In this document: one piece after another, positions 27,801 through 33,800 of the stretch
Layout of the letters: the number at the start of each line of letters is the position of its first letter
How positions within the stretch are numbered: the stretch's first letter is position 1
Assembly: GCA_047495785.1 (NCBI GenBank)
Contig: JBLDXI010000017.1
Location: 186,001-250,000 of the forward strand
Reading direction: 5' to 3'
DNA length: 64,000 bases
Source: Lepidodermella squamata
Taxonomy: Eukaryota; Animalia; Gastrotricha
Notes under the pieces: generated by a model
Told to the model about the DNA's origin: nothing
What the model saw: the letters and a program-made list of their open reading frames with translations, nothing else
Database searches by the model: none
Program-made: the position numbers and the translations under genes

Positions 27801-30800
27801 ATGTATACATAACTATCGTTTTCATTTCCAAATTGTTGATGTGGGCAGCTTTAACAATTTCCTTGGTATGCCTTAACATCTCTTCCATGTAACTATAGGA
27901 ATCGTGCATTTTTATTTTTTACTATATACTCTCCCTGAGATTTTTCATTTCAGTGAGAAATTCTTTGATTTCGAGCTTTGCTTTCTCTTTCCTCTCTTTC
28001 TGACTTACTTTTCTAATTTCAGCCTGTTTTTCTTGTTGCTGCTTAGCAGTTAAGAAGCTGTTATAAAGAGACTCAAACTTAATCTTCTCTTTTTCCATGT
28101 CTAACAATTTTCGCTCAATATCTTTCGCCGATCCTTTTTTGATCTTTTCGAGTTCCCTGTACTGTTTACTTAACGCTTTGAATCCTATGGAAATATCCTT
28201 AATTTCTTGTTTTAACTGCTCTTGGATGCTTTCATTATCATCCAACATTTCATCCACTTCTGTCAGCGCTATGAATGTACCTGGCATGTCTATATTAGTA
28301 GTCGAGAAATTTATTTTCGCTTTCTTCTCACCTGAACTGCATTCATCAGCATAATTTTTAGTGGATATTTATTATTTTCAAATTTCAGCCTGTTTTTCTT
28401 GTTGCTGATTAGCAGTTAAGAGGCTGCTATAAAGAGACTCGAACTTAATCTTCTCTTTTTCCATGTCTAACAATTTTCGCTCAATTTCTTTCTCCGATCC
28501 TTTTTTCATCTTTTCGAGTTCCCTGTACTGTTTACATAAAGTTTTGTATCCTACGGAAATATCCTTAATTTCTTGTTTAACCCGCTCTAGGATGCTTTCA
28601 TAATCTTCCATCATTTCAATCACTTCTGTCAGCGCTACGAATGTATCTGGCATGTCTATATAAGTTGTCGAGAAATTTATTGTCGCTTTCTTCTCGCCTG
28701 AACTTCATTCATTGACATAATTTTTACTGGATACTGATTATTCTCTTCCGGGGGTAGTAAATTCACCTTAATATTGCCTCCATGCTGACGCTTATAGCCG
28801 GAGTTTTCTCTAAATTCTTGATTCGAGCCTAGCCATTTCTGTAAATTATAATATATCATCCCTTTGCTCACGTTGAATTTCGCCGCAATTTGTAATACAG
28901 GGGTTTTGCCTTTAAAATATTCTTCAATAATTTTGGCTTTAGTTTCTGTGCTTATTTTTTTCGTTCTCAACATACTTACCTTATATACAGAAAATTTTTT
29001 AAAGTTTGAAAGTCTGAACGTTCAAACGTTCGAACTTCGCATGCGTTGGCATGTGCCCTTTTACAAGCATATTTACACGTTTGAACGGTTGAACGCTTGA
29101 ACGTTTAAACGTTTGGACGTTCAAGCGTTTGGACGCTTAAATATGTCATCAGAGCAATAGATTAGAGCATCTAGAATAATTTCATCCTGACAAGTAATGA
29201 CCGTGCTCTCATTCGCGCTTGCAGGCGCGGGTTCAACTTCTTTTCTTAGAGCTGATGATTCATTGAAGTCGCGCTCACAAGCGCACATGCCCGAAAGCTT
29301 TCTATGTATTTTTTGTATTTCATGTAGAGAGGATGTTTTAGAGGCTTGCATTTTTCCTATTGTTAAGCTAGATATTATTATGGAACCACTGTTGATATGA
29401 AAAGACTGTAATAATTAGCCATTTATTAGCTTCTTTATTAATCATTCATCTTCGGTTTTGTGCTTGTGATTCAACTTGTATCGCACTATTGCGGAGCTCA
29501 CTTAGAATGCATCAGTTACTCACCCCACAGCTAAACAACACTTTTCGACTTTACGTCATCTAAATCAAGCAGAGCCGAAATTATCGTTCCACTCTGCATA
29601 TCGATCTGTTGTCAATACAGACTTCTTAATCTTATGAAGCGAATGTTCAATCATTTCTCTAGTAATCAGCTGCTGACGATATGCTGAGTGATAGAGGTCA
29701 ATATCCTTGCAAAGAGAGACGTAAGAGGCATCTCGGCAAACATTAAACATGTCAGAAAAAGAATAACCCTCCATAGCCTGAGCCAGGTTTTCAAAGTCCT
29801 TTTCTGCTAGGTTGTTGCGGTTTGCCAACACTGCTTTCAAATACTTGATGCGACTGTCAACTAGTCATTGGGAATTATATTCCATATAAAAGTTGAGTAA
29901 ATTAGCCTAAAAACATTCCTAACCTGCCGGCATTGGTATATATATTCGTTTTTCGAACCTTCGAATTAGAGCTCTATCCAAGTCCCAAGGGAAATTTGTT
30001 GCTCCTATTACACATACGCCAGTCGCGTTCGCAGATGAATGGAACCCTTTCAAATATTTGGAATAAATAAATAAATATTATTGTCATTTCTGATGTAGCG
30101 AAATAGACCTTGAATTTGACTCAGGAGTTCTGACTTAACACGTCTGCTGGACTCATGCTCAGTTTCGTTTCCCCGCATTGTTGCGAGACTGTCTATTTCA
30201 TCGATAAAGATGACACTTGGTGTTTTTGCCCGCGCCTGTTCAAACAACTCTCGAACGGCTTTCTCAGAATCGCCTCGCCACTTTATTGTTAAAGAGGACA
30301 TTGTCACGTTGAAAAATGAGCCTCCAGGGTAAGTTGTCAGCAACTCTTGTGCGAGAGCCTATGAGCCTACACTTAATAACGAGAACTTGAAATTAACTGA
30401 AAACAAACTTGGATCAGCATGGTTTTTCCGTTTCCTGTATATCATGAAAATGGAAAGTGAGAATAATTTTATTGTCGATTGATAGCCTACCAGGCGGGCC
30501 AAACAAGAGAACCCCACCCCATGGCTTGTCGAGCCCAGTGAACAGTTGTTTGAAGTAGATATTATTGGGGATAATAGCGGCGTAGCGTAGCAGGCGCTTA
30601 GCCTCATCATGTCCAGCTATATCTTTCCTTTAATTGATTATTTTGGTTAATGATATAACTAGTATCTATAAAATAACATACCAGCTAACATTCGGAGGTT
30701 TAATAACACGATCTCGCAAAACGATTTCTGTAACTCGCTCCTTTTCCTTTTCGTCAAATTGTGTGACAGGATCGTTTCTCGCAGCGCTCATTACTGAAAC

Positions 30801-33800
30801 AAGAGTACGTATCATGGCCATATTTCACATTTATGCTGCCCTACGCAATAGTTATCTTTCAATTTCTACATGATAACGCTACCATTTGATACTTAATTAT
30901 CTCTTATCATAAAGAGAACAAAAGTGAGCGACAAGCAGCAATATAGATTATTTTCAAGTCATTGCTCTCACGGAAATGGGAAATTGTTGAAATGGGGAGT
31001 GCTTTCTCAGCTGCGTGGAACACGGTAAAAGCCTTTGCTAAGCGGGTAGTTGAAAAAATCGTTGATCGCATTACTTCAGCGTTATCGATAGCTTCATCGG
31101 TACTACTACAAGAGCTGGTTACAGCAGTTAGAGAGAACAATCCAGACGTTGCAGAAGCAGCTGCTGGAAGACTCCCCCCGGATGATCGACAAGAAATAGT
31201 CCGGACTCTTCGAGAATACATAGATGCCTTGGAAAACCCAGATGCTTACTAAATGTCATCACATTTCAGTTGATATAAGTTATGTATTGAAACACTGTTG
31301 TTAGTGTGATAAATTAATTATGTTTTTGCCAGTGATTTATGTTTTAACACCATCCTATTTATTCAAGTAAATTGCAATAAACTGTAAATATAATACATCA
31401 CATTTGTTGTTTTATTTGAATACAGCTTTGTCAGATTCGACAATAATGCTTATACCATCATCATATTTTTCATTGCATGCGGTTTCTGAAGATCTTACTA
31501 TTCTGAATACACAACGCTTGGCGATGAAAAACCAGTGAGCAGGAGTTCGCATCGGATGAAAATGTAATTTCTAGCAGCTGTTTCAGCTGAGACCCCTTTT
31601 CAGGTCCATCCCCAAATTTTCAAGATCGGAAAATTCGGACAGTCGGCGAAACTCAATTTAATTTAAGCTGGATATGCCTAGGCAGCGATTTTAACTCGTT
31701 GGTGATGATTTTTGCATTTCGCAGAGCCCATGCGAAAAGCCGAAGATTTGCCTCGGAGAATATGATAAAAGATGAAAATTTTATTTTGAGGCGGCTGGCT
31801 ATATGAATCTATATGAATCGGTAAGCCATGCTGAAACTCCTTGGTCTTGCGAAATTTGTTTGTCAAATCTCTCACAACCTGGCATCACAACACTCAAACC
31901 CTGATATTTGGGAATCATGTTTATTGTGATCTAAATAACAGAATTCATGTGTAAGAGCGGGTTGCGGTTCGAGTAGCGAAGTATATTTCATGATCTTTCA
32001 TTCTTCAGATGCTTGATTTCCTTTTTCAATGAATGGATCTTTTGCTCACATTTTGCTCGAACTCCGCGCGAATCTAGAACCGTGACTCCAACTTTAATCA
32101 AATCGAGATCTTCAAACAGGAAAGAGATGTATTCAAATTTGTCGAAATAAGTGTCAACTTACGTTCTGGACTGATTTCAATAAAATAGCGTTTCCTTCCT
32201 TTCGTGTAATTGGTAGCTATTTCAGTCTTCAGGCTTTCGACGTCATGTTTTGTTGAAGTGGAGCGTTGAATCGTATGCATAAAATTAGGGGAGTCAGTCA
32301 TAATCGAGTTAATAATTGATAGGGGGTAAAATTGCTACGAAAATAAGCATGGCGCAGTAAATATCTGTATGTATCTGAAAATGTCTCTGTCTTTGCATAG
32401 CAATTACCAGTGAAACTCATAGGCTCCAAAAGGGTCGTAATTCATAGGGTTGTAAAAATAAACTTGATCACACAATCCAAACAAGCAGAGCCCCTTGCAG
32501 AATTCGAACATTTCACGGTCCTTTGAATCTCCTGCCGTTATGAAGTGGAGCTGAAGGTCAGATCTGTTCAGTTTCTGTAGCAGAGTTTTAACTGCCTTGA
32601 AGAAAAAATTATGTCCGCCGCTTCCGAGACGAATCAAGCGCAGTTGATTGAATTCGGATTGCTGAATTATGCTCAGAACCGCTTGTATCTGAAGAAAAGC
32701 ATCCTCGGAGTCCAGCATTTGCGGAAAACCTTCCACGGACTTCATTTTGATTTGAACCGGTAAGTTCTCGGGCATATTGAAAATTCTTCCTAATTTTGCT
32801 TTGTCTTTTTCCCAGCTGCTGTCGGGGTACAAGGGAGTAACTAAACCGATCACAATTGTTCCAATTGGTGTTGTTTGAAATGGAACTCTTCTCATAGCAA
32901 GCATATTTCCTTGAATTCCGGGGAAAAAAGAATCCGAGGGATGATTTCGTATTTGGTTTGCCTGTGGATCACCTTCCGACTCCGAGGAGCTATCTTCAAT
33001 GGCGTTTCTATTTCTTCTGGGCATGGCAATGATGCTGTACTACGCTAAAAATCATAAAGGCATATCAAGGTGGTTACACTCTCCTACCTCTGTAAATCGC
33101 AGAATTTAGTATTTGTCACTTGAAAAGGGCTGGGCTGAGAAATAACTGCACTTGTAGCTACTAGCAAACCGCATGGCCTCAGTGAAAGGAGTATTCAGTC
33201 TTCCGACTATTGAGTCCGACTGTCTTGTAAATCGGTATCAGAAGATGATATTCATCATCGCTGCCATGCTGTGAGCTTTTGAGCCCTCTGAAGTTCGTCG
33301 ACATTTACTCACATACGATTAAAAAACGACACTTGTACCAGGAATTTTAAGATATGCTGTGAATAGAAGACCAGTCGAGAATATTGAACGCTTATTCAAA
33401 AGAAGCAAAAAATCGCTTCAGTACTCGAAGTAAATGATGTTTAGATGAAAGGAGTCGCCAGGCAACCCTTTGATCTTACTCTGTCGCCATTGCACCGCTT
33501 TTGGTTCAAGAATTCGCACTTCATTATTCTGTATTGGTTTAAATTACCCGCCCCTACTCCGCAGCATTACACTGACCGCGGGCCTGTCGTGGTTGTTCGG
33601 TGAGCAGCTAGATTAGATGGAGAGAGCTATTTCAACTCGAGCGACCTATCACAACAAAAATTATTATGCGTTGCATGGCTCAAATAAAACGAGTAGTTGT
33701 CTAACTGATTTCTTTTGTGAAGTTATAACAGTGCGCAGGACGTCTTATCCCGTGTAAATTTCATTTTCAGGGGCTGTTCTGAAAGGCACCCTTTTTCAGG

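Follow-up and report, generated by a model that had tools for sequence, protein, structure and literature searches.

How a virus-like mobile element of animals comes to carry an ATPase gene of the microtubule-severing family, and what such a gene may do there, is the question raised by a 64-kb stretch of contig JBLDXI010000017.1 of the gastrotrich Lepidodermella squamata. This stretch of 64,000 nucleotides, referred to here as the window, contains a complete-looking Polinton/Maverick-type element (positions 11104-34019, 22,916 bp), recognised by its terminal inverted repeats (TIRs), target-site duplication, core genes and low-G+C core. On the reverse strand of the element, at 29565-30821, lies a six-exon gene for an AAA ATPase that resembles the catalytic p60 subunit of katanin without its MIT domain. 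The explanation that we favour, at a probability of roughly 0.55, is that the Polinton carries a captured, motor-only katanin p60 gene, the product of which is probably an ATPase and would alter microtubule severing. The part that concerns origin and identity, namely that a cellular animal katanin p60 gene was taken up by the element, is very probable. The Polinton that carries the AAA gene is known here from one copy, and from its sequence alone.

The gene reads from high to low coordinates. Exon 1 (30682-30821) begins with an ATG followed by about 26 residues without a recognised relative, and continues into the pre-AAA helix of katanins. Exon 2 (30491-30627) extends from the start of the AAA domain through the first half of the Walker A motif, the second half of which is encoded by exon 3 (30409-30434), a 26-nt exon. 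Pore loop 1, Walker B and pore loop 2 are found in exon 4 (30109-30358), and sensor-1 and the arginine-finger pair in exon 5 (29924-30046). Exon 6 (29565-29860) encodes the lid domain (AAA_lid_3), a predicted C-terminal helix and an FGS-type tail, and ends with the stop codon. The exons are separated by introns 1 (30628-30681, 54 bp, phase 2 in a Trp codon), 2 (30435-30490, 56 bp, phase 1 in a Gly codon), 3 (30359-30408, 50 bp, phase 0), 4 (30047-30108, 62 bp, phase 1 in a Gly codon) and 5 (29861-29923, 63 bp, phase 1). All five start with GT and end with AG, and intron 2 interrupts the fourth codon of Walker A.

The splice model was verified arithmetically and exon by exon. The exon lengths (140, 137, 26, 250, 123 and 296 nt) add up to 972 nt, corresponding to 323 codons plus a stop. 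A three-frame reading of positions 29500-30900 revealed that each of the six exons is open in the frame required by the model, and the four split codons are all sense codons (W, G, G and V). An in-frame stop is located one codon 5' of the ATG. Downstream of the gene, two AATAAA hexamers on the same strand (29422-29427 and 29434-29439; consensus matches only) are found 126 and 138 nt past the stop codon. The G+C content is 44.7% in the exons and 26.3% in the introns. A preliminary description of this DNA had proposed an uninterrupted 323-residue ORF (open reading frame) with five short GT-AG introns, one of them within Walker A, which the plain ORF list would show as fragments only. Lengths, frames, splice sites and the ORF list itself all agree with that proposal. 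The five introns show no mutual similarity, and an introner-type origin is consequently not indicated.

Profile searches recovered the AAA module in pieces that follow the exon order. The Pfam AAA profile was matched at positions 24-95 by exon 4 (E = 3.2e-18) and at positions 97-130 by exon 5, and exon 6 fell on AAA_lid_3. For comparison at the residue level, the translated exons were aligned one by one to eight cellular katanins of animal, fungal and protist origin. Together they cover residues ~243-541 of butterfly katanin and are gapless at every junction. The alignment contains Walker A and Walker B, the two pore loops, sensor-1, the arginine pair and the FGS-type C-terminus; the preliminary description had listed these motifs as well, with one of the pore loops. 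The two pore loops lie gap-free in exon 4, and identical strings occur in the aligned cellular katanins.

Two kinds of evidence were used to assign the gene to a family: per-exon searches of solved structures, and the domains and names found for the top-ranking representatives in sequence libraries. Among solved structures, exon 2 matched VPS4B, katanin A-like 1 and spastin, and exon 5 matched katanin A1 and VPS4. Exon 4 is less specific, as VAT, Cdc48, katanin and fidgetin-like 1 were matched about equally among many classic AAA proteins. Exon 6 matched katanin A1 and A-like 1 (E = 3.4e-7 and 1e-6, respectively) to their last residue, and spastin more weakly. Summed over all exons, katanin p60 chains are the best match; chain 6b5c_A, a katanin p60 A-like 1, reaches 31.0 + 81.8 + 42.5 + 32.3 = 187.6 bits, with chain ranges that are collinear across the exons (26-67, 78-153, 169-198 and 220-307). 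The remaining katanin p60 A1 and A-like 1 chains were likewise matched by every exon. Spastin gave lower scores with exons 2, 5 and 6, and does not appear in the list of 60 chains for exon 4.

When exon 4 was searched exhaustively against 1.84 billion cluster representatives, 14,410 matches were obtained. The best full-length relatives, as ranked by tblastn against the gene region, feature the architecture KATNA1_MIT + AAA + lid + Vps4_C, and the named close relatives, found in butterflies, a damselfly, a chytrid, pineapple, a coral and metagenomes, are all katanin p60 A1 or A-like 1 proteins. These data support the assignment of the putative ATPase to the meiotic AAA clade as a member of katanin p60 type. 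As regards the clade-specific C-terminal helix, exon 6 reaches the last residue of both the katanin p60 chains and the cellular katanins, and the Pfam Vps4_C domain was undetected at E-values up to 1.

The preliminary description had placed the gene in a joint katanin/VPS4 clade. The katanin p60 part of this placement is borne out by the structures and by the named relatives; the VPS4 part is not favoured, since the C-terminal exon matches no VPS4 chain. A VPS4-type ATPase would act on ESCRT-III filaments, for instance to remodel membranes when particles are released. Two points speak for this reading: VPS4 is a member of the same AAA clade, and with exons 2 and 5 the matches to VPS4 chains are about as good as those to katanin chains. 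In contrast, exon 6 matched katanin p60 (3.4e-7) and spastin, whereas no VPS4, fidgetin-like 1 or mei-1 chain was matched by this exon in the solved-structure search. VPS4 carries a beta domain insertion in the lid; at this site the window protein features a deletion, not an insertion, relative to katanins. Moreover, neither MIT nor Vps4_C was found by Pfam, all named close relatives are katanin p60 proteins, and the introns that the gene shares with cellular genes, described below, are introns of katanin genes. A VPS4-type ATPase is accordingly a most improbable reading of the locus.

Relative to a normal katanin, ~230 N-terminal residues are absent from the gene, including the MIT domain and most of the linker. 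No Pfam match of any kind was obtained in exon 1 or in the upstream ORFs, and tblastn searches with the eight katanins revealed no other katanin-like piece within the window. The preliminary description had reported the MIT domain as missing, and both searches concur.

The intron positions of the gene bear on its origin. Introns were expressed as codon and phase in butterfly katanin numbering, and cellular katanin genes were fetched by exact protein look-up. In this numbering, the five introns of the window gene map to codon 260 (phase 2), codon 304 (phase 1), the boundary between codons 312 and 313, codon 391 (phase 1) and codon 434 (phase 1). Three of them (introns 2, 4 and 5) occur at the position and phase of introns of cellular animal katanin genes. 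In the katanin gene of a damselfly (L003), codon 434 is split in phase 1, as it is by intron 5. An arthropod-like katanin gene (L008, Logan SRR18067518) matches both intron 2, at codon 304 in phase 1 within Walker A, and intron 5, at codon 434 in phase 1. Intron 4 is matched by a Stylophora coral katanin A1-like fragment (L007) and by a gene from GCA_900617795.1 (L010). In both, the exon ends after the first base of Gly codon 391, where homology ends and a consensus donor starts (GTGAGT in L007, GTAAGA in L010). Both the annotated protein of L010 and the coral fragment derive from gene models in which the reading frame runs on into an intron. No shared positions were found in the butterfly, chytrid and partial pineapple katanin genes, and the aphelid katanin gene appears to be intron-free, as its called range measures exactly 571 codons.

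Because introns 2, 4 and 5 are common to the window gene and cellular animal katanin genes, capture at the DNA level, which the preliminary description had put forward, is supported. Composition points in the same direction. The core genes of the Polinton are long intron-free ORFs with a G+C content of 31-35%, and the AAA gene is the only one found with recognisable introns. The G+C content of its exons resembles that of host ORFs (44-52%), not that of the core ORFs. The combination of intron-free core genes and host-like exons fits the uptake of genomic DNA better than that of a processed copy.

The captured sequence has diverged considerably. Identity was counted over the columns of exons 2 and 4-6, less the first dozen of exon 4. 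It is 44-50% between the window protein and the eight cellular katanins, and 57-71% among these eight. Of the 92 columns that are invariant in these eight proteins, 74 are kept and 18 are changed. The predicted protein is a long-branch katanin relative, and its divergence exceeds that seen between katanins from different kingdoms. Since the branch is long, and no cluster representative exceeds 66% identity to exon 4, a recent copying of an ordinary KATNA1 gene does not account for it. Despite 44-50% identity, it carries neither a stop nor a frameshift. As judged from such deep divergence without disruption, and with the catalytic motifs all intact, purifying selection must have acted on the lineage of the gene during most of its history. 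Selection could have acted within a host genome, within the element, or both.

The AAA gene is flanked by the ends of the Polinton on both sides. The element is bordered by the 6-bp target-site duplication ACGGAT, found at 11098-11103 and, as a perfect copy, at 34020-34025. Its TIRs are 285 bp long (left, 11104-11388, forward; right, 33735-34019, reverse) and 98% complementary; the arms of 286 nt reported by the repeat tool include one flanking base that pairs by chance. A diverged TIR copy is located internally at 31523-31800 on the reverse strand. It is similar to the left TIR at 89% over 207 nt and 73% over 60 nt, and lacks ~24 terminal nt. The AAA gene lies inside the outer TIR pair and also 0.7 kb inside the internal copy, and the coordinates agree with its position as first described. 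The element is inserted in the ORF of a long interspersed nuclear element (LINE), which it interrupts between the endonuclease and the reverse transcriptase. The upstream piece (9724-11103, forward) features an Exo_endo_phos_2 domain and is open to the codon boundary at 11103, the downstream piece (34026-35450, forward) features RVT_1 (8.7e-32), and the two copies of the target duplication share one codon phase. With TIRs that are 98% identical and an intact target duplication, this Polinton copy looks young.

These boundaries bear on the alternative that the AAA gene is not part of the mobile unit at all, either because host DNA entered the element after its insertion or because the assembly is chimeric. 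The right arm is indeed odd, with the internal diverged TIR copy and a further ~1.9 kb to the outer TIR, and the G+C content, which is 31-35% in the Polinton core and 41-50% in the flanks, rises from ~29 kb onwards. However, the gene is enclosed by the internal as well as by the outer TIR, its flanks are free of repeats, duplications and terminal structures, and the whole element resides in the LINE ORF with a perfect 6-bp duplication. We regard an origin outside the mobile unit as improbable. The search around the gene likewise gave no sign of a nested transposon. The doubled right end of the Polinton suggests a past rearrangement or a recombination between related elements. The ~1.9-kb segment between the internal TIR copy and the outer TIR (31801-33734) has an ORF of 206 residues (32404-33024, reverse) with 42.8% G+C and no family match.

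The sequence of events that we propose is as follows. The Polinton would have acquired a katanin p60 gene of animal cells in the form of genomic DNA, with its introns. The captured gene would have been reduced to the AAA motor, in which the pre-AAA helix is followed by the nucleotide-binding domain, the lid domain and the predicted C-terminal helix, and would have moved with the Polinton at the latest in the insertion that gave rise to this copy. Its product is probably an ATP-driven, ring-forming translocase of katanin type, since the motifs required for ATP hydrolysis and substrate threading, and the predicted C-terminal helix, were kept while the lineage diverged to ~50% identity. Katanin rings pull tubulin tails by their pore loops, and the C-terminal helix is critical for the formation of katanin hexamers (PMC6279391). 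That the product is still an active ATPase seems somewhat more probable than the opposite, to judge from the residues retained.

Severing is a different matter. In katanin, the MIT domain and the linker bind microtubules and p80, and the minimal AAA domain shows no detectable severing, according to a review (PMC6279391). The captured protein is probably unable to sever microtubules alone, because the MIT domain and most of the linker, which serve as anchors to microtubules and to p80, are missing. It would co-assemble with host p60, or act through a partner that binds its short new N-terminus. Either route would alter microtubule severing in the cells that express the element. For a subunit that acts purely as a poison, intact catalytic and pore residues would be dispensable, although inheritance from a recent donor could account for these residues equally well. 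The preliminary description had proposed a viral effector or a dominant-negative subunit, and the present observations speak neither for nor against these two roles. A microtubule-related role that serves the element is a tentative suggestion, less probable than not. A stronger version, in which the motor-only katanin would be a conserved accessory gene of an animal Polinton lineage, co-expressed with the element and remodelling host microtubules, for example by entering or poisoning katanin rings, appears rather unlikely.

Alternatively, the gene may be a passenger of no use to the element. In this case, part of a katanin-family gene of the host, perhaps of an already diverged MIT-less paralogue, would have been captured recently by one element lineage, and the young age of the capture would be the sole reason for its intact state. 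Several features of the locus are those expected of a passenger. The exon composition is host-like, the gene is the only intron-bearing one found among intron-free core ORFs, it lacks a 17-nt motif that is common to the upstream regions of core genes, it has no relative above 66% identity, some 230 N-terminal katanin residues are missing, and the element looks young. A passenger fits less well with the clean truncation of the gene, which has an ATG preceded by a stop, canonical splice sites and downstream polyadenylation hexamers. It also fits less well with the retention of all catalytic and pore motifs over a long divergence, though constraint in the host genome before capture could explain this retention. 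Given that possibility, a passenger gene differs from the captured katanin motor that we favour only in its benefit to the element. We consider that a passenger is possible, with the odds against it.

A number of observations weigh against the explanation that we favour, some of them touching on the origin of the gene and others on its function. The 18 changed invariant columns include two Arg pairs. The lack of any relative more than 66% identical to exon 4, among 1.84 billion cluster representatives, is matched by a search of a word-indexed protein collection with the exon 6 fragment, which gave no matches; both searches also missed the ORF of the window itself, such that the source genome may be outside the libraries and the blanks are weak evidence. 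Introns 1 and 3 match no intron in the genes compared. In L007 and L010, the exon downstream of intron 4 is off the contig or distant, and the match consists of a donor site and a loss of homology. The coral fragment lacks introns 2 and 3 and has an intron that is absent from the window gene; the donor was therefore not a gene of that coral type, and may have been a paralogue.

The same caution applies to the probability of the intron matches. In trials with random placement, at least three matches with the 18 reference positions were obtained in a fraction of 8.5e-5, an optimistic estimate for two reasons: all three shared introns are in phase 1 at G|G, a favoured proto-splice context, and L007, L008 and L010 were chosen after their ORF fragments had broken off suggestively. 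The argument from composition is weakened because both arms of the Polinton are richer in G+C than the core. The 17-nt motif of the core genes was not found upstream of the AAA gene. Finally, in a copy as young as this one, an intact gene says little about selection within the element.

In the recognised ORFs of the remainder of the Polinton, we have seen neither stops nor frameshifts. The largest encodes a protein-primed family-B DNA polymerase (pPolB) of 1411 residues (13791-18026, reverse). This ORF has more than 5,280 homologues, from cnidarians and molluscs where named, several of which are 45-47% identical and carry PF03175. Pfam detected no polymerase domain in the window ORF itself, and the assignment was made via these PF03175-carrying homologues. 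The closest relatives, at 62% identity, lie on ENA contigs. Residues 632-679 of pPolB resemble Endonuclease VII (PF02945; Pfam 1.6e-4, just under the cut-off; PHROGs 8.6e-6), and many pPolB homologues also feature an Endonuclease VII domain, or C2H2 zinc fingers.

The integrase gene (18527-19993, reverse) encodes an rve domain (2.9e-13) preceded by a PLA2-like N-terminal domain (PF08398, residues 35-92) and followed by a C-terminal chromodomain. A fused gene model of the coral Stylophora (P0261) features rve, PLA2-like and chromo domains plus Endonuclease VII. A packaging ATPase of the A32/FtsK type is encoded at 20061-20816 on the forward strand (Pox_A32, 4.4e-8). A candidate adenovirus-type protease (25156-25611, forward) is a weak match to Peptidase_C5 (E = 0.007; 16.5 bits, below the cut-off of 21.3), and an ORF with a weak match to VLTF3 is also present. 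The candidate capsid ORFs at 20828-24531 matched nothing in Pfam or PHROGs. The 17-nt motif mentioned above occurs between core genes in pairs 38 nt apart, at 20027-20085 and 22680-22776, and inverted at 13733-13781. There are five matches, against 0.05 expected by chance, and the motif may be a shared promoter element.

Several small features are located in the right part of the element, around the AAA gene. An ORF of 202 residues (27010-27618, forward) shows a weak match, below the cut-off, to the 2TM effector domain SLATT_5 (4.6e-5). A stretch of 300 nt is duplicated in tandem with 91% identity (28009-28308 and 28375-28674) and contains two small coiled-coil-like ORFs on the reverse strand, and the adjoining ORF at 28677-28973 (reverse) has a weak helix-turn-helix match. 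A palindromic array with an 8-bp period is found at 29068-29146, ~420 nt downstream of the stop codon of the AAA gene. On the other side of the gene, a 96-residue helical ORF (30962-31252, forward), for which a weak HAAS match was the only one obtained, is oriented divergently, with ~140 nt between the two start codons, and the two may share a bidirectional control region. Scans for sigma-70-type promoters and for terminators gave nothing above chance, and are irrelevant to a eukaryotic gene.

Outside the LINE, the genes flanking the Polinton feature Cys-loop receptor, ANF-receptor, MAM, CUB and astacin domains, a content that marks the host as an animal. Several pieces of Cys-loop receptor genes are found at 236-7502, 47827-48222 and 53159-53633 as diverged inverted repeats (76-83%). 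Two long intron-free ANF-receptor ORFs occupy 50648-53050 and 54983-57331; the former, the only one of the two that was searched, had no homologue at E ≤ 1e-10 in a word-indexed search.

Polintons are known to take up host genes, and the cargo described so far is of other kinds; here, the cargo is the motor of a microtubule-severing family. Trimmed to the catalytic ring and yet provided with ancestral introns, it would represent a dated and traceable capture of genomic DNA by a virus-like animal element. Should related elements keep the AAA gene, this would point to an undescribed means by which they could influence the cytoskeleton, and would provide a natural "AAA ring only" katanin variant, which may reveal what the MIT arms contribute. 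As a kept accessory gene, it would make the Polinton the first virus-like element, in the literature searched, with its own AAA ATPase of the microtubule-severing type. If it is a one-off passenger, the locus is still a clean example of cellular exons moved by Polintons.

Among known systems, the closest to the gene itself is katanin p60 (KATNA1/KATNAL1). Both feature a single classic AAA module with a preceding helix, two pore loops, the arginine pair and the lid, a C-terminal region that aligns to the end of katanin, and three intron positions in common. In contrast to katanin p60, the window gene has no MIT domain and almost no linker, its Vps4_C is undetected, and it is carried by a mobile element. 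Spastin and VPS4 are in the same AAA clade and score similarly to katanin on exons 2 and 5. They differ in that no VPS4 chain matches exon 6 and that spastin scores lower than katanin on each exon for which it is listed, and the MIT domain is lacking in the window gene with respect to both.

The element as a whole can be compared with polintoviruses of corals and other marine invertebrates (PMC11131425). The window pPolB is 41-47% identical to cnidarian and mollusc proteins, a VLTF3-like ORF is present, and the combination of rve, PLA2-like and chromo domains recurs in the coral gene model. The accessory functions listed for coral polintoviruses include no AAA or katanin-type gene (PMC11131425), and we found no report, in the literature searched, of a katanin in a Polinton, Maverick, adintovirus, polintovirus or virophage, or of any other AAA protein of the meiotic clade in a Maverick/Polinton element. 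The capture has its best parallel in nematode Mavericks, in which a cellular cargo gene likewise resides beside an intact core. The cargo reported there, as summarised in PMC11131425, consists of protease and kinase genes (bioRxiv 10.1101/2022.07.12.499685), unlike the katanin-type AAA found here. Host-gene capture by Mavericks is thus already known; what is new, relative to the literature searched, is a katanin-type cargo in a Polinton, together with three ancestral intron positions.

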